DNA from: Ylistrum balloti
Lineage: Eukaryota
DNA: 64,000 bases
Direction of reading: 5' to 3'
NCBI RefSeq assembly: GCF_031769215.1
Contig: NW_026781977.1
Location: forward strand, 1,116,001-1,180,000
A program made the position numbers and the translations under genes. Below the pieces are notes generated by a model, which did no database searches, had not been told where the DNA came from, and saw only the letters and a program-made list of their open reading frames with translations. Position 1 is the first letter of the stretch. The number at the start of each line of letters is the position of its first letter. Positions 260 through 31,610 of this stretch are shown here, in pieces.

Positions 260-23805
<23,546 letters not shown>

Positions 23806-23854: not shown

Positions 23855-25662
23855 AGATTGGCAAGCTCTCATTGTTAATCAAGAGCACTTAACTAATAAA
23901 GTTAGGAAGTTCTTTCATCATTTTCCTCAAGATATACCACAATAATTCATCATGATGATTCGAGCTGAAATATTTCATTATGTATACCATGTGTATTTGG
24001 ATGTAAAGTTTTGCAGCATGCTGTAGATAGAAAATATCAACAAATCTTATAACATTTAAAACAAACGGCGAACTTATTTCTCTATAACTAGACCCACAGC
24101 ACTCAGTTTATCACATCATAATATTTCTCAGAATTATTTCTTTACTATTCATTCTAGAAATCCAAGTTGAATTTGCAAATAAAGAACATTCTATGGTTCA
24201 GGGTTTCTAATTGGTATCACATTGTTAAACATGAGTCTATACCCGTTTTGTTTTCAGATGAACTAGATGATGAGACAATTTCTTTTTATGGTAATATTTT
24301 TGTTCCTTGATTGATTTCTTTCGTTACTTTTGTCATTGAAATATTTTTAGTTAAGTCCTGATAAAATGAAAATAAAATCCAAAAACATTGGATTAGCAGG
24401 TTATGTGTTTATGTGCTCTGTATTTATAAAGATTGGTTTTGGAACAACACAATCTCAATTCAGTTTGATAAGAAATATTTTATTTAAATCTGCCAGGTGA
24501 TGTTTGGTACAATGCTATGATCAATAGCACATATTTTCGAACACATTGGCAATTCTCAGAAAGATTCCTATGACAATATCTGGTACATTGTATAAAACAC
24601 TGATATTTAGGTAGGAAGGAGTCAATATGTAGGAAAAGGTACTTATTCAGGTTGAATAATCATATATTTTTGTGAGGTTCAAATTTCATAGTTTTCCAAA
24701 AACATCCATTTTGGTTGACACTTAATTTCCTTGATTAACCTTACAAAATCCAATTATATAAATCTTGATGGTTTCATGGACATAACATTTCTCAGATATA
24801 GAGTACCCACGAGTTAAACAAAAAAAATCCGTCGTGAAATTAATCATTTTACAGTACAGTGTATGTACTGAAATATCATTACCTTCAAAGTAGGTGAATC
24901 TACTCCTAGAATGTATTCCTAATTTGATGCTTCAGGAATCTTCCTACACTTTGGCTTAGTTTTAACTTATATAACTTGTTAAAATATCCATTCCAAGAAA
25001 TTGATAGCAATGAATAAATGAATGCGCAATTTTGATTTCTGCAGAATAATTTCACTTTGAAGAATAGGCAACTATATTGTATGGTACTGGAGAATTTGTC
25101 CCTATTGCCAAAACTGCTTATAATTCTCTGTCAGAGAACATCTTACCAACAAATCAAACATTCTCGATATTATGAATGTTGATTATAAGGTATCAGATAC
25201 CAGTGTTTTGATTTAGCTTTCAAAATAGATTTATCAATATACCAAACATACAAAAATGAAAACATTCTCCTGATCATGATCAATAATAATTTCTACTGTG
25301 TAATAGGTCAAACTGAATATCTCAAATCATTATTGTCACTTCTTTGTGTAGTAACACAAAGAACCTGAAAACTTTACACAGAAAATAAATCTGTATAGAT
25401 TTTTATCTGAAATATTTGTCTTGTTTTTTGTTGATTTACTGTTGAAAAGATGGCTGTATTTTACCAATCAGGTTTCGTGCCCATTATTAATGAAAGCAGT
25501 TTTTAAATAACCATTTGATAAAGCGAAGAAAATATTACTTTTGTTTGATATCATTTTTTGTCTGTTACAGACTTCCAAAACATTCATGATTTATTATGTT
25601 TGAAAGAATGTTTCACATATTTTTTAGTTACAACAATGAATCATGATTGTTTCAATTTGCCC

Positions 25663-26314
25663 TTAAAACAGGTCACATGGCAAACTTTTTATGTCCTTTT
25701 GAGTGTTAAGTCTCAGGCGTGCATCTATATTTCCTGCTTGATAAACACCAAACACTGGCCAAAGGTCCTGCTGATCGTCTACATCTGTAAAAGTGTATAT
25801 CCTTTTTGTAATGTCAAGGTCAAACACAGCGATGGTCCTAGCCACTCTGTTCATGTAGAATCCAAGTTTCAAATTTTTTTCTGTCCCAGAAGTAGAGTCA
25901 CTGAGAACTTTCCTGAACATGATGGAGCCACCATTACATTTGAAGAAGAGGACAACACCATCAGTACCAGAATTATGTGCATTAACCGACCAGGCCCCAC
26001 TTTGCCGACCGACATAGTGACCTTTACTGATTGCATTTTCTGTTGCAAAGGCTACCTCAAAAACCAGATTGGCTGCAGATAAGTCACTTTCTATTTGGTA
26101 GGAGATATCAGTCTCAAAGTAGACTATTTCTGTGCTTGTAAACACTGTGGAACCTCGTGCTCCCTCATACATTTGGGTTTGATAAGGTTCTGTTGGCAAG
26201 TTGTAGGATATGTCCAGTTGTAGGATATGTCCAGATGTCTATTGGACATGGTAAGTTTATCACTGGACAGATACCGTGTATACAGAGTACCTGGATCCAT
26301 GAAGAAGCGGGGAC
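25663..26314 (-). CDS. Coding exon 2, PRY/SPRY (B30.2) domain, frameshifted
   Basis: The provided ORF 26199-25663 covers the SPRY part; the PRY part lies upstream in another frame, across the 17-bp duplication. Confidence 0.8.
26201..26234. repeat. Perfect 17-bp tandem duplication TTGTAGGATATGTCCAG x2
   Basis: 26201-26217 and 26218-26234 are identical. Confidence 0.98.
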
Positions 26315-26411
26315 CTAGACAAAATAAAGTTATTGTTTTTAAATATAATAAAGATTAACATTTCCCTGGTAAATATATGTCTTGCACATCTGACCTGGCG
26401 AGGGCAACTGG

Positions 26412-27116
26412 TTTTTAGCTCACCTGGCCATGTCCGTCATCCGTCCGTCAGCGTCTGTCAACTTTTCATTTAAACAACTTCTTCTGAAATACCAAAAGGC
26501 GTAGAGTTATCATATTTGGCTGGAAGGTTCCTTTGATGAAGTCAAACAGAGTTTGCAAAAACAGAAATGACCTTGACCCATATTCAAGGTCACAGAGGTA
26601 AAATGTCTTAAAACCTTTAAACAACTTCTTCCAAAATACCAGAAGGCCTAGAATCATTATATTTGGCTGGAAGGTTCCTTTGATGAAGCCCAACAAAGTT
26701 TGCAAAAAAAAAAAAAAAAAAACTTAACCCATATTCAAGGTCACAGAGGTCAAATGTATTAAAAAATTTTTAGGGACTTTCAAAATACCGGAGGGCCTAG
26801 AATCATTATATTAGGGTAATATGTTCCTCTTATGGTGTCCTACAAAGTTTGCTTAAAGAAATGACCTTAACCAATCTTCAAGGTCACAGGAGTAAAATGT
26901 GTTAAAACGTTTAAACAATTTCTTCTGAAATATCGAAAAGCCTAGAATCATTATATTTGGCCAGTTTGTTCCTTTCATGAAGTCCAAGAAAGTAAAGAAA
27001 TGACCTTGACCCATGGTCAAGGTCACATGTGTCAAATGTGTTAAACGTGGAACATTTGCACAGACATAGTAATGTTGGTCATAAAGATCCAGGTGAGCGA
27101 TACCGGGCCTCTTGTT
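26412..27116 (+). mobile_element. Helentron/HINE-like element with sub-terminal inverted repeats and ~4 internal ~147-bp satellite-like units
   Basis: GCTCACCTGG (26418-26427) and CCAGGTGAGC (27089-27098), a (GTCC/GTCT)-like microsatellite after the 5' end, T-rich flanks, internal period ~147 bp. Confidence 0.8.
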
Positions 27117-27331
27117 TCTGGTAAAACGGAGACCTAGCCCTTCCATGAGTCCACTTGGAGGGATCAAACTTTACGACAGTTGATATTGAAACTGAACATT
27201 TTGTTATGTTGTTCCACATGGTTGTATCTTTAATAATGCACATATGAGTTACTTCAGGAAGTCAGGAATAAAGATTGTGCAAACTATGCTCTTAGTGTTC
27301 CCTAACTCACTGGGCCTGGGGAAGGTTCAAA

Positions 27332-28110
27332 TTTTTAGGTCATCTGACCCGAAGGGTCTTGATGACCTATAGTCATCCTGTTTTACCGGTTGTCCTGCTC
27401 TGTGACTCGTGTAAACGTTCCATTCAGATCACTTCTTCTCAACCAATAGGCCCAGGTGGTGATCTTTTTGCCTATGGCATAATGGAATGAAGGGCTACCA
27501 CAATTTTTGGAAATATGAATGTTCCTGACCCACTTTAAAGGTCACAGGGGTCAAATATTTTAAAATCTTTAAACAACTTCTCAATAAGAAGATGACCCAG
27601 GTTGCTGATATTATGTATAGCATGCTAGGAGGAAGTTTTTTTTCCAATATGAATTACCCTTGACCAATTTTCAATGTCACAGGGGATGAATGTGTAAAAA
27701 TCTTGAAACGACTTCTTTTCTAAAACAAAATGCCAAGAGTGCAGATATTTGGCCAGTAGCTTTTTGATTAAAAGGGCTACCAAGTATTTTCACATTACTG
27801 ACTTTGACCAATTTTAAGGTCCTAAAGGCTTCAGATGCTTATCTTGGGCATAGTGCATGCTTGGACGAAGAGTTACCAATTTTGTTCACGTGATAGACAT
27901 TTTCTCTTTTTAAAGATCACGGGGGTCGAATGTGTTAAAATCTTTTTCTCAGTAATGAAATGGTCCAGGCTGTTGATATTTGTACGTTAACATAAGTGGA
28001 TGAAGAGCTACCAAGTTCATTCAAATAATTGACCTCGACCTATATTCAAGGTCTCTTGGGTCAAATGAGTTGAGATCTTAAAATGTCTTTTTCAACGAGC
28101 AATAGGCTCG
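27332..28110 (+). mobile_element. Related Helentron/HINE-like element with ~145-bp degenerate internal repeats (end approximate)
   Basis: Begins tttttaggtcatctgacc; recurring aacaacttcttctc..gatatttggcc..caaggtcacaggggtcaaa units. Confidence 0.65.
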
Positions 28111-28610
28111 AAGTAATGACAGTTTTTTTTATTTATATTAAGAATATGATTTAAAGAATGCAGAAAATGTTTTTAATGAATCAACAATGTCTCCTTTGTA
28201 AGCTGTAGAGTAGTTGAGAAACTGTTCAGTCCCTATTTGGCCCATTGCATATATATAGTCAGATGTTAATAATTTATAGGGAAGTCTTCCTTAACCACCC
28301 CGGACAAAATTCGTTCATACTTAATTTTAGCCTTAGCAAGTCAGAATTCCTAGTAGTAAAATGAGGGTCATTACCTCCAAAGGGCACTGGTTTATGGGGC
28401 CAAAAAGTACATTTTATTTAACAATCTTTCTTTGTTGTTTTAGAAACGTCTGAGCTAAATAGTCTAAATATTTTAGTGGGCAAGCAATAAATGTTTTTAT
28501 TTTTCAAGGTTTTAGAGATTAATAAGACTAGTTGTTAAACTCTTGTCACCTAACTGTTAAATGTACGTGTGATACCCGTGTGTTTCTTGTTATGATAAAA
28601 GATTTGCCCG

Positions 28611-28860
28611 TTATTAGCTCACCTGGTACGAAAGACTTGTTAGCTTATGCCATAGCACACCATCCATCGTCTGTCTGGCGTCCGTCAACTTTTTACTACA
28701 AATCGCTACTCCTGTGGGAATAGATGGAAACTGCCAAAATTTGGCCTCAACTATTCTGTGGCGAAGGAGAATTATTTGGTATAAATATAAGGTTTCGGCC
28801 ACCTCCTGGGGCGAGAGGGACAGGGCCTACTAGTGGCAAATAGAGTTAATTCTTTAAAAA
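28611..28860 (+). mobile_element. Helentron/HINE-like 5' fragment
   Basis: ttattagctcacctgg start followed by a cgtctgtctggcgtccgtc microsatellite-like segment. Confidence 0.6.
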
Positions 28861-29848
28861 TTCTATTTCTGTAGTTGGAATAATTTCACTTACACTCGAG
28901 TCCGTTGATTACACATCTCGGCGAGGGGCAGCCATTCGTCATCACTATATAAAACATGTCAAAATGCACACATTAAAATGAAAATATGACTCGGCGGAAC
29001 TCGCATAGATCGATGGAAAACGCAACTAATTTCATGAGCGAAATTACGAGGAAGTAGGCTCTGCACACTTAAAGATAAGTTTATTTCAGGTTCATGACTT
29101 ATATGGAAGGCTCAAAAAAGAAAAAAAATTATACAAAATATTGAAATATTAAAAATATTACAGTCATTTTACATAGACCTCTTGCAAATGTACCTCATGT
29201 ATACAATTTGGAAATTATGTGATTGCAGTTCCAGTTCCGTTCCAGTTAGTAACAGTGATAACTCACAAAAATATTACAATAATGCGAACTTGTCACTGCC
29301 ATTGAAACGCAAATTAACAGTGCTTCGGCAACCTAAAATAAATTGAACGGTGCACAGATCTGATTTCTTTATGACTTGATGACAATGACATGAACTATTC
29401 TCTTTCTACTGATGATAAATGTATTTTTCATATCTACCATGTTTGTGTTCGGTACGAGACTGACGTCTGTGGTATTATACCATCCCTTGTTCCAACCCAC
29501 AGGGATCTTGTCAAAAACCTGACAAATCTCTGAAGTTAATTGTGAGGTCGTATTTCTGATTGACAATATAAAATAAATATTTTACCATTTTTCTGCTTTT
29601 CCATATTGTATTTAGGAGGAGAAAGCTCATAATATTTCTAAATATAAATTGCAATGTAAAGATGAAGTCTCAAATAAGTCCGTATGTTTTGCTTTCCACA
29701 CACTTCAACTGTAACGTAAATGAACCGATAGTGACCCCTGACCTCATTAAACATAACCACGAAGAGTAATAAAGAAGATATGAAAACGTGAGTAAATGAA
29801 TGCACGGCCTAAGGAAGACTGTAAAGGTCTCAATTCATATATTATAAA

Positions 29849-30123
29849 CCTAGGAGGCGACTGAGGAAAATTTTAAGTAATCGAAACAAATGGCACAATC
29901 TAATTGAGGATATGCACTAGCCCTGCAATTAAGTAAATTTCGTAAATTCCATACATGTGATAATTTTAGAAGCAAAAGTTCAAATTTTTATCCGGAACTG
30001 TGCAAATACTCTAATGAAATAAAACATGACAGACAGGCTGGTAAACCCCGCGGACTAATAGTCCAGCAGTGGTGTCTATCAGGTGAAATCTCGAAGATTC
30101 TACAAAAGGCGAACAAGTGAATA
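29849..30123. mobile_element. Truncated homolog of the hammerhead-bearing unit at 37108-37521
   Basis: Shares CCTAGGAGGCGACT and ACAAGTGAATA anchors at near-identical spacing (264 vs 267 bp), plus intermediate similarity. Confidence 0.6.
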
Positions 30124-30275
30124 CCATCTGTTATTGCAACTATGGGGGAAAATTACTCAGTTCGTAAGATAAATTCTTCAGATGGTGATACTTATATCAC
30201 ACTTAATACATACAAATGGAGTTTTGCTAAAACAGTATACGCTGTCCCGTTCTCTCAATACCAGATATGTCTTAC

Positions 30276-30522
30276 CTGATGCGGGATTTTCTACATTCAT
30301 GGAGTCTAATTCTGAAAGGATCCGCCTGTTTTCCATCTCCAGGTGTTCCACTCTTGCTTCAAGAACTTTTATCGTGTCCAGTACTGCATGCCTCACTCGC
30401 TCTAACACGGCCTGCTCCAGGAAAACAGCATTCTTTTCTTTTCCAATTAGTTGAGAATGCCCAGTTGATTTCAAACAGATTAAAATCTGAATGATCAGAA
30501 CCAAACTATCGTTGTTTATCAT
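30276..30522 (-). CDS. Coding exon 1 of secreted coiled-coil/B30.2 gene (signal peptide + coiled coil)
   Basis: ATG at 30522 in aaaATG context; hydrophobic stretch followed by GHS-QL; gtaag donor at 30275; an upstream acceptor at 30601-30600 implies a further 5' UTR exon. Confidence 0.7.
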
Positions 30523-30767
30523 TTTTAAACTGTATGATGGGTCATGTACACCGCTGTTGTATCTACAAAACTTGATTGAGTGTCCTAAGTGGACACGTCC
30601 TGTGATACACAAAACACAACGAGTGACAGTATATTAAACTTAGCAGCTAAATTCAGCTATGATGAACAGGAAGTTTGTCGTTAGATAATCACGATTGCAT
30701 TATACTAATAATAAACTTTATTTATTTTACAACAATTGCGAAACAAGATTTTCCAACTTATATTTAT

Positions 30768-31342: not shown

Positions 31343-31610
31343 TTGACCTTCACCAATATCGGCGTGACATTCACTGAAATCGATATGACCTTCACTGAAG
31401 TCAATGTGATCTTAAGTGAAGGCAATGTGATCCTTCACCAAAATCGATGTGATTTTCACTTAAAGTTGACTTTCACCAAAGTTGACCTGACCTTCACTGA
31501 AATCAATATGACCTTCAATGAAGTCGATGTGACCTCTATAAAAGTTGGTGTCAACTTAACAACCAAAGTTTACGTGACGTTTACCAATGTCGATGTGACC
31601 TTTACATAAA
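31343..31610 (+). repeat. Degenerate 21-bp minisatellite (TGACCTTCACTGAAATCGATG-like), ~13 units
   Basis: Visible periodic tgacct/ttcac..aat..g pattern; gives the repetitive TFTE ORF. Confidence 0.85.

Follow-up and report, generated by a model that had tools for sequence, protein, structure and literature searches.

Background

Many intracellular immune proteins, among them TRIM5alpha, TRIM21, pyrin and butyrophilins with their tails, use a B30.2 domain as the end that binds the target. To our knowledge, few B30.2 proteins are secreted, and those few have been linked with venoms or with effectors of parasites. Ohanin and other snake-venom vespryns have a signal peptide in front of an SPRY/B30.2 domain that acts outside the producing cell. 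The SPRYSEC effectors of nematodes likewise begin with a signal peptide, and their SPRY/B30.2 domain serves as a protein-binding platform outside the cell that produces it (PMC5071358). Bivalve C1q-domain, fibrinogen-related and collectin-type proteins, which have undergone lineage-specific duplications, combine a leader, an oligomerising helix and a globular head.

In this report, we analyze a gene that has this last layout with a B30.2 domain as its head. It lies in a 64-kb stretch of DNA from the scallop Ylistrum balloti, the whole of which is called the window below. We conclude, with a probability of about 0.78, that it is a three-exon gene of a scallop-restricted leader, zipper and B30.2 family, and that the copy in the window is broken by a 17-bp duplication, probably as a segregating null allele. 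Searches of the literature on the gene identifiers of the homologues and on secreted B30.2/SPRY proteins in bivalves found nothing relevant, and a conserved scallop family with a signal peptide and a zipper before a TRIM-derived B30.2 head is undescribed in the literature that was searched.

Results and discussion

Gene structure

The locus is a real scallop gene on the minus strand, with three coding exons (Table 1). An earlier note, made from the sequence of the window alone, had joined two open-reading-frame fragments in phase 1 into a continuous protein of 293 aa. Both fragments exist on the minus strand; exon 1 does end in phase 1 at its donor (30276|30275), and the last exon follows a gtctag acceptor. 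A third coding exon of 51 nt was overlooked, however, and the 293 aa result only if this exon is skipped and one copy of the repeat described below is removed.

Exons were searched singly, with the natural, intact paralogue P0001 taking the place of the full-length protein. Exon 1 aligns without gaps, start Met included, to the seven scallop homologues that have an N-terminus, and is also supported by tblastn. The 51-nt exon was located by a pattern search of the intron, after which its splice sites were read. It is also present in P0001, P0002, P0004, P0005 and P0008, and the paralogue locus has it at the corresponding position; it is a cassette exon in some homologues, and most of them, as well as the annotated model of the paralogue, have it. 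Apart from the duplication, no stop or frameshift was found in the 310 codons, and all splice sites are canonical.

Table 1. Features of the locus, in window coordinates
Feature	Position	Strand	Details
Coding exon 1	30276..30522	-	ATG 30522-30520; 82 codons plus one base, phase 1; donor GTAAGA at 30275
Predicted signal peptide, residues 1-23	30454..30522	-	11-residue hydrophobic core, Gly at -3, Ser at -1, then conserved QLIG motif
Amphipathic helix and five-heptad leucine-zipper-like coiled coil	30292..30453	-	Conserved; Asn at core 'a' position, from heptad table
Small coding exon	28894..28944	-	51 nt, phase 1 to 1; acceptor tatag, donor GTAAGT; three-Cys linker (CP..C......C pattern)
Last exon	25663..26314	-	Acceptor gtctag at 26314; stop TAA 25665-25663 in SPRY frame; encodes putative PRY/SPRY (B30.2) domain, split over two frames
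Tandem duplication, unit GGACATATCCTACAACT	26199..26238	-	17 bp, 2.4 copies; frameshift in hypervariable PRY-SPRY loop
Open frame with SPRY core	25666..26238	-	191 codons; out of frame with upstream exons
Premature stop TAG	26124..26126	-	In splice-set frame; 162 codons with small exon, 145 without
Poly(A) signal AATAAA	25590..25595	-	About 70 nt past stop codon

A divergent B30.2 head

The earlier note had proposed a complete PRY/SPRY-like domain, to be checked with HMMER. The window pieces match neither Pfam PRY (PF13765) nor SPRY (PF00622) even at E = 1. None of the eight scallop homologues reaches the gathering score, although four of them match SPRY below threshold (best E 0.0034), and a PDB sequence search with the window pieces also gave no match. 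These missing matches reflect divergence and not absence of the domain. AlphaFold2 (AF2) models have a pLDDT of 90 for the paralogue and 91.4 for the window's own 191-aa piece, and the predicted bent beta-sandwich superposes on solved PRY-SPRY domains. In Foldseek, all matches listed for the paralogue are solved PRY/SPRY (B30.2) domains, including those of TRIM65, TRIM25, MID1/2 and BTN3A1, with a probability of 1.00 and a TM-score to the target of 0.64-0.77 for isolated-domain entries. The 191-aa piece retrieves the same matches, and every one listed is again a solved B30.2 domain at a probability of 1.00.

Sequence homology to recognised members points the same way. The family profile matches the MID1 B30.2 domain at E = 0.0067, with the PRY motif and the C-terminal strands aligned. 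A profile search of 1.84 billion representatives gave 148 matches, the long ones carrying RING plus B-box, TIR or TSP1 modules; one match, P0011 (E 9e-51), scores 33.2 bits with Pfam SPRY against a cut-off of 26.3, inside the matched stretch. Judged by predicted fold and profile matches together, the head is a divergent PRY/SPRY (B30.2) domain; the proposed domain is thus present, but in the window copy it is split between two frames.

The predicted sandwich is that of the B30.2 domains of TRIM25, TRIM65, MID1/MID2, TRIM21, TRIM5alpha and the butyrophilins. As in TRIM proteins, a coiled coil lies directly upstream of the B30.2 domain, and variability peaks in the loop that corresponds to TRIM variable loop 1; bivalve TRIMs are also the nearest longer sequence relatives of the scallop family. 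Unlike TRIMs, the scallop protein has a predicted signal peptide, is presumably extracellular, and is too diverged for Pfam PRY/SPRY. SPRYSECs and vespryns lack a coiled coil and a Cys linker and come from lineages unrelated to scallops, and their origin is independent; neither group occurs among the named matches of the homologue and profile searches, in which no specific sequence relationship was seen. For C1q and fibrinogen domains, neither the window pieces nor the homologues have a Pfam match, and the Foldseek matches listed are B30.2 only.

A small family restricted to scallops

Eight scallop homologues (204-323 aa, seven of them full-length at 291-323 aa) are "uncharacterized" proteins of Ylistrum, Mizuhopecten, Pecten and Argopecten, named LOC132554842, LOC110465253, LOC117342151 and others, and none has a Pfam domain on record. 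They share a leader, a five-heptad zipper, a three-Cys linker and a beta-sandwich. All three window exons align to this colinear layout and share its three-exon structure, and the SPRY open frame is 55-63% identical to the scallop homologues. Ylistrum balloti has two close copies. The paralogue, at G000:C45, is intact and annotated, has the same three exons, and is identical in its last exon to Ylistrum balloti LOC132554842. The window copy pairs with it in the tree (support 90/97), and, like the humoral recognition proteins of bivalves named above, the family shows duplications specific to lineages.

The family, strictly defined, was found in no group other than scallops (Pectinidae), with 2-5 copies per annotated genome. 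The suggestion that bivalves have an oligomerising, secreted B30.2 recognition family therefore holds in part: a family with leader, coiled coil and B30.2 fold and without RING or B-box does exist, but it is small, confined to scallops, and frameshifted in the window copy. Its size, which the earlier note had wanted measured, is unlike the large expansions of C1q and FREP genes. C1q-domain and fibrinogen-related families run to tens to hundreds of genes, so the likeness to them is one of design only.

In bivalves, the same B30.2 subgroup is also joined to RING/B-box (TRIM), TIR, filamin and TSP1 modules. The TSP1-linked proteins, such as 'THBS2S' of Mytilus coruscus (P0028), match the family profile at E values of about 1e-23; they are found in mussels, and have extracellular TSP1 repeats in place of the leader and zipper.

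A 17-bp tandem duplication breaks the window copy

Tandem Repeats Finder (TRF) reports a period of 17 and 2.4 copies at the duplication, which is also exactly where the frame changes in tblastn with the homologues and where a 17-column gap opens when the paralogue DNA is aligned to the window. The duplication falls between the PRY and SPRY parts, in the stretch where the family varies most. Because it shifts the frame, the SPRY core is out of the frame set by splicing: the frame that enters from the 26314 acceptor has a PRY-like start and then a shifted tail that ends at the premature TAG. The reading frame of the reference copy is thus interrupted, and its B30.2 head cannot be made as written. 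Its mRNA would instead encode a stub of 162 aa (or 145 aa) with leader, zipper and linker and without the SPRY core. Nonsense-mediated decay should spare this transcript, because its stop is in the last exon; this agrees with the apparently spliced contig bearing the duplication that is described below.

Candidate splice sites that might rescue the frame were considered and rejected. An AG at 26240-26239 has the wrong phase. Another at 26191-26190 regains the SPRY frame only from exon 1 and runs into a TAA from the small exon; its pyrimidine tract is poor, and its use would remove the PRY strands. Rescue by alternative splicing is also opposed by the X6 contig, whose first piece ends at the 26314 acceptor.

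Contigs from public runs and the status of the broken copy

Record 27 of X6 (389 nt) covers 26034-26312 with 0 gaps and therefore carries the duplication. The X6 bin depths are 6.12 x 53/174 for the small exon and 6.12 x 57/174 for exon 1. Together, record lengths and bin depths suggest that the X6 contig is a spliced transcript of exon 3, small exon and exon 1, as it appears to be. An origin from a retrocopy was rejected, as the genome holds no such copy. Among the runs holding locus sequence, none is on record as RNA. X6 possibly comes from the same individual as the assembly, and would then be no independent witness of the duplication.

Other individuals differ. The X3 contig over 25500-26478 leaves out exactly 17 letters, and those of X1 and X5 over the last exon would fit such a gap as well; arithmetic on the record lengths would place the missing letters at the duplication. 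Because these contigs are 17 letters shorter over the last exon, the duplication probably marks a null allele that segregates in the population, and not a fixed pseudogene. Coding differences between alleles at the locus number 7 nonsynonymous to 2 synonymous, a ratio that fits decay and diversifying selection equally.

The alternative that the copy is a fixed, decaying pseudogene, one that arose from the C45 gene by lineage-specific duplication, lost its function in Ylistrum and gives transcripts that are mere noise, seems unlikely to us. It would account for the frameshift in the reference and for the 7:2 ratio, as well as for a branch somewhat longer than that of the paralogue (0.33 versus 0.24). 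Moreover, the searched protein collection has no protein for the window locus, though the annotated paralogue is present, so annotators may treat the locus as a pseudogene. Yet the lesion is single, both frames are open over their full length, and the start codon, all splice sites and the poly(A) signal are undamaged. Two residues of the alternative allele (Ile in the VFDI motif and Thr in the SATN motif) restore residues conserved in the family, and the 17-letter shortfall in other individuals points in the opposite direction.

The same shortfall in X1, X3 and X5, whose last-exon contigs are shorter than the window by amounts including 17 letters, could instead mean that the gene is intact in the animal and makes a secreted B30.2 protein of 310 or 293 aa normally, the duplication being either an artefact of assembly or consensus, or confined to one haplotype if the reference individual is heterozygous. 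The otherwise undamaged 310 codons and canonical splice sites would agree with this. We regard it as improbable, however, because the X6 contig carries the duplication and the assembly has no alternative haplotig of the locus. Furthermore, the 40-bp period-17 region has no repeated 31-mer, so k-mer assemblies would neither create nor collapse the duplication by accident.

Leader and secretion

The hydrophobic N-terminal leader that had been claimed is present, and in all members having an N-terminus it has the properties of a cleavable signal peptide. Manual hydropathy and a (-3,-1) check were used to assess it. Exon 1 has a best 10-residue Kyte-Doolittle score of 3.26 and lacks a 19-residue segment of transmembrane grade; its short n-region, a core within 7-15 residues, small residues at -3 and -1 and the lack of a later transmembrane segment are those of a signal peptide. 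Eight full-length relatives (seven close family members plus P0016) have the same pattern, while P0010 and P0014, also scanned, do not. Properties of the leader are conserved across the family and its sequence is not, with conservation beginning exactly after the predicted cleavage site. In the AF2 model of the paralogue, residues 5-20 form a low-confidence helix. On these sequence features, the encoded family protein is probably secreted.

The claimed lack of RING, B-box and transmembrane segments was borne out, and a second hydrophobic segment is also absent. Neither RING nor B-box was found in the 64-kb window, including 33 kb upstream, by regular expressions or by tblastn with 46 relatives of at least 450 aa, many of them TRIM-like; the homologue models begin with the leader, and no B-box Pfam match occurs in the eight homologues. 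It is therefore very unlikely that the protein is a signal-anchored one, part of a cytosolic protein, or an ordinary TRIM with upstream RING/B-box exons, despite the cytosolic TRIM and TIR proteins among its closest longer relatives, a pyrimidine-rich acceptor-like site in frame upstream of the ATG (30601-30602) and a TM-like segment in one distant relative (P0014), since all seven full-length homologue models share the start Met, a hydrophobic core of 10-12 residues, too short for a membrane span, and the small residues after it, and since four conserved Cys are present and the TSP1-linked relatives show use of this B30.2 subgroup outside the cell.

Zipper, linker and oligomerisation

A heptad-rich segment had also been predicted correctly, and consists of five heptads with a conserved core Asn. 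AF2 models residues 28-77 of the paralogue as a helix, with a block-mean pLDDT of about 86-96 over residues 31-70 and lower values towards both ends. As in TRIMs, this coiled coil precedes the C-terminal domain, but it is much shorter: a five-heptad zipper as against the long, antiparallel coiled coil of TRIMs. The core Asn hints that the zipper is probably a parallel dimer. A complex prediction for two copies of the mature paralogue (P0001 residues 24-313, one run) scored 0.02. The optional three-Cys linker and an invariant C-terminal Cys could form disulfides. Weak bZIP/CREB matches were seen for the zipper segment.

Possible biological role

As predicted, a family protein of about 290-325 aa would consist of a cleavable signal peptide, a strongly conserved amphipathic helix, the zipper, the optional linker and the divergent B30.2 sandwich. 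Since other proteins join heads of this bivalve subgroup to RING/B-box, TIR, filamin and TSP1 modules, those of the scallop family look like a TRIM-type binding end moved to the secretory pathway. The family may have a recognition role, presumably as a soluble oligomeric binder that grips its target through variable B30.2 loops.

A bolder proposal is that scallops turned a TRIM-type sensor end into a humoral receptor. This would be a B30.2 protein that is secreted as a disulfide-linked dimer and uses its hypervariable loop to bind microbes or other foreign targets; it would evolve by lineage-specific duplication, with null and intact alleles kept in populations. We hold this only tentatively, and consider it doubtful in its entirety. 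If true, it would be an extracellular counterpart of recognition in the style of TRIM5 and TRIM21, and a new class of soluble pattern-recognition protein in invertebrates. More generally, because the bivalve subgroup is associated with TIR, RING/B-box and TSP1, it is a candidate for a general sensor module in the immunity of bivalves. The family is invisible to Pfam, and is therefore missed by domain-based immune-gene censuses of bivalves.

Presence/absence and null-allele variation is typical of bivalve genomes, and in many bivalve immune genes null alleles persist in populations alongside intact ones. The broken window copy is ordinary in itself, and is useful mainly as a possible case of such variation.

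Gene structure and frameshift

The minus-strand gene comprises three exons (see table). The earlier note had described two exons joined in phase 1. The donor of exon 1, the acceptor of the last exon and the phase-1 join all stand, but a third exon of 51 nt had been missed. Most homologues carry approximately 17-20 additional residues, including three cysteines, between the leucine-zipper-like segment (zipper) and the start of the PRY region; the intron, searched by pattern, yielded the small exon as the corresponding piece. The same three exons recur, in unchanged order, in the annotated paralogue of this genome. Because a Mizuhopecten isoform (X2; P0003, 291 aa) skips the small exon, comparison of the sequences indicates that it may be a cassette exon. 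Exon 1 codes for a hydrophobic leader followed by a helical, heptad-rich stretch.

Features of the B30.2 gene in window coordinates
Feature	Position	Strand	Description	Basis
Exon 1	ATG at 30522; ends before donor at 30275	minus	82 codons + one base; GTAAGA donor	sequence reading
Small exon	28944-28894	minus	51 nt, phase 1 to phase 1; tatag acceptor, GTAAGT donor	pattern search of intron
Last exon	start 26314	minus	after gtctag acceptor	sequence reading
SPRY-like ORF	26238-25666; stop 25665-25663	minus	other frame than the spliced one	
17-bp tandem duplication	26199-26238		period 17, 2.4 copies, 95% matches	

The frame set by the phase-1 splice runs for 62 codons into the last exon, coding first for the PRY-like start and afterwards for unrelated residues, before it ends at a TAG (26126-26124). 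The SPRY-like ORF is out of this frame because of a clean 17-bp tandem duplication. In tblastn searches, the eight homologues described below switch from frame -3 to frame -2 precisely at the duplication, and the DNA alignment with the paralogue contains one 17-column gap, at the same site. As written, the gene codes for 162 aa, a length that falls to 145 aa when the small exon is skipped. The intact 293-aa ORF proposed previously is thus not present: its length equals (247 + 652 - 17)/3 - 1, and so presupposes that one repeat copy was silently dropped. The window copy is a frameshifted allele.

The duplication falls exactly in the loop that links the PRY strands to the SPRY core (residues 132-145 of P0001, the intact Ylistrum paralogue LOC132554842). 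This loop is the part of the family that varies most, in sequence as well as in length. Strands show clearly stronger conservation than loops (mean entropy 0.67 versus 1.13). By position, we take this loop to correspond to variable loop 1, the specificity determinant of TRIM5alpha.

Evidence from sequencing runs

Logan contigs of four public runs (X1, X3, X5 and X6) were placed on positions 25500-30700. Among the runs holding the exon, none is recorded as RNA; X6 is a 20-million-letter run whose DNA label is only a guess. Coverage by X6 lies on the exons, apart from the repeat-derived intron sequence (26370-27590) and two other intronic bins (27936-28109 at 4.1 and 28632-28805 at 0.9). One X6 contig, record 27 (389 nt), covers 26034-26312 with 0 gaps and therefore contains the duplication; its other 110 letters are unplaced. 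The X6 bin depths at the small exon (1.86) and at exon 1 (2.0) equal 6.12 x 53/174 and 6.12 x 57/174, and the letters sum accordingly (279 + 53 + 57 = 389). The two surplus letters at the small exon are accounted for by the GT with which the last exon, like the donor, starts. From its length and these depths, we read record 27 as a spliced transcript of exon 1, the small exon and the last exon that carries the frameshift. A retrocopy as the source of this contig was excluded by a search of the window's own genome. Because the stop lies in the last exon, nonsense-mediated decay is not expected.

The other three runs, X1, X3 and X5, come from two studies and are contig sets of genome size. In each of them, the last exon is spanned by contigs that fall short of the window's length: X3 leaves out exactly 17 letters and inserts none, X1 leaves out 17 and inserts 8, and X5 leaves out 35. 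The simplest reading of these letter counts, with the position deduced, is that the individuals concerned lack the duplication, which we consider likely. Among the sites listed, nine coding positions distinguish the contigs from the window (7 nonsynonymous, 2 synonymous); at two of the nine, it is the other allele that encodes the residue conserved in the family. The same three sets have 25 extra letters within 30071-30575, an interval that includes part of intron 1, exon 1 and 5' flank. Because exon 1 of the window aligns to homologues free of gaps, this difference is probably non-coding.

A small family in scallops

Searches were run exon by exon, with P0001 used in place of a full-length protein. 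A word-index protein search with the 191-aa SPRY frame of the window matched eight proteins, all from scallops (Ylistrum balloti, Mizuhopecten yessoensis, Pecten maximus, Argopecten irradians and one Logan assembly). These proteins are 204-323 aa long, 55-63% identical and uniformly named "uncharacterized", and they can be aligned across leader, zipper, linker and head. The protein of the window's own locus was not found in the searched collection, which fits a locus that is unannotated or called a pseudogene.

One close paralogue is present in the window's own genome (648.5 Mb, 1372 contigs). It lies on contig C45, and its last exon is identical to that of LOC132554842. The genome also contains six distant matches, which are B30.2-like exons with 25-33% identity. 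A maximum-likelihood tree groups the window copy with the C45 gene (support 90/97), and the Mizuhopecten and Argopecten copies each cluster in groups of their own; the family therefore grows by lineage-specific duplication. The proposal of a bivalve recognition-protein family holds in that a real family has the proposed layout, but judged by sequence and strictly defined, this family is small and confined to scallops. Our literature search found nothing on a scallop family combining leader, zipper and B30.2 domain.

Another Ylistrum protein from the profile search, P0016 (LOC132547717, 335 aa), has its own clear signal peptide and a helix before the domain. It suggests a possible second secreted subfamily.

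Identity of the head domain

Pfam gave no match for the window's pieces, no Pfam domain is recorded for any of the eight homologues, and the Pfam SPRY model matched four of the eight, all below threshold. However, three other lines of evidence (profile, relatives and fold) agree that the head is a true B30.2 domain, as the earlier note had supposed. First, the family profile matches the solved MID1 B30.2 domain (E = 0.0067), in an alignment that takes in the PRY motif and the final strands, and weakly matches BTN3A1. Second, an exhaustive profile search retrieved 148 proteins at E <= 0.001. The long matches are bivalve proteins in which RING and B-box domains (some with filamin), TIR domains or TSP1 repeats precede the matched C-terminal domain, and in one Mytilus protein, Pfam SPRY scores above its cut-off within the matched stretch. 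Third, an AlphaFold2 model of the intact paralogue (63-sequence alignment) has a mean pLDDT of 90, exceeding 95 across the head. Its listed Foldseek matches in the PDB are all PRY/SPRY (B30.2) domains at probability 1.00, including TRIM65, TRIM25, MID1/2, BTN3A1, TRIM7 and TRIM21, with TM to target of 0.64-0.77 for isolated-domain entries. The window's own 191-aa piece gives the same fold (pLDDT 91.4) and the same matches.

Among these relatives, the divergent B30.2 subgroup to which the head belongs is joined in bivalves to TIR domains and to thrombospondin type-1 repeats (P0069, P0070, P0028, P0034, P0040, P0044 and P0014). Most of the heads concerned are likewise missed by Pfam SPRY, and one Logan protein among them has its head behind a TM-like segment.

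Proposed secretion, oligomerization and role

Signal-peptide features were assessed by hand from hydropathy and the residues at -3 and -1. Exon 1 and seven close full-length members share a hydrophobic core of 10-12 residues (best 10-residue hydropathy 2.3-3.9), followed by Gly/Ala at -3 and Ser/Ala/Thr at -1, immediately preceding a conserved QLIG(E/K)EK motif. The leader is variable in sequence, with conservation setting in from the predicted cleavage site onward, and the start Met position is common to all homologue models. A 19-residue stretch reaches about 2.0 in only two members (P0004, 1.99; P0008, 2.09), inside the leader and including non-hydrophobic flanks; beyond the leader, the members scanned have no segment of membrane-span grade. 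Four cysteines are conserved, three in the linker and an invariant one near the C-terminus. Regular expressions and tblastn with 46 relatives of at least 450 aa revealed neither RING nor B-box sequences anywhere in the window, 33 kb of upstream sequence included. The leader and the lack of RING and B-box described earlier are thus borne out, and the family protein is probably secreted (probability roughly 0.8).

The heptad-rich segment was also correctly recognized. Column-wise hydrophobicity reveals five regular heptads (P0001 residues 40-75), the paralogue model has one long helix at residues 28-77, and five of seven members, like the window copy, have Asn at a core "a" position. A core Asn favors parallel dimers, as in the GCN4 zipper; the resemblance to such a coiled coil explains weak bZIP/CREB matches. 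Complex prediction with two copies scored 0.02. Tentatively, the heptad pattern hints that the family protein might dimerize.

Intact members would most likely be soluble binders, probably dimeric, that contact targets through the variable B30.2 loops. The TIR, TRIM and TSP1 architectures of relatives suggest a possible role in immune recognition. The literature found treats immune sensing by SPRY proteins in general terms (PMC8195603), and secreted SPRY proteins came up there only for nematodes (SPRYSEC; PMC5071358).

Repeats in the window

A 30-bp minisatellite (62 repeats, 92% matches) occupies 9022-10895. It is stop-free on both strands and therefore produces mirror ORFs of 561 and 545 aa. 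BORCS6 and spectrin-like Pfam matches to it lack a genuine matched segment and resemble low-complexity noise. Positions 26370-27590, in intron 2, contain a 147-bp tandem repeat (3.6 copies, 26469-26993) adjoined by very high-copy dispersed repeats; in whole-genome runs, summed contig depth there reaches ~186,000, versus ~16 in flanking unique sequence. Tandem repeats of 21 bp (5.7 copies) and 16 bp at 31344-31486, ~0.8 kb upstream of the start codon, lie inside an 88-aa stop-free frame on the plus strand.
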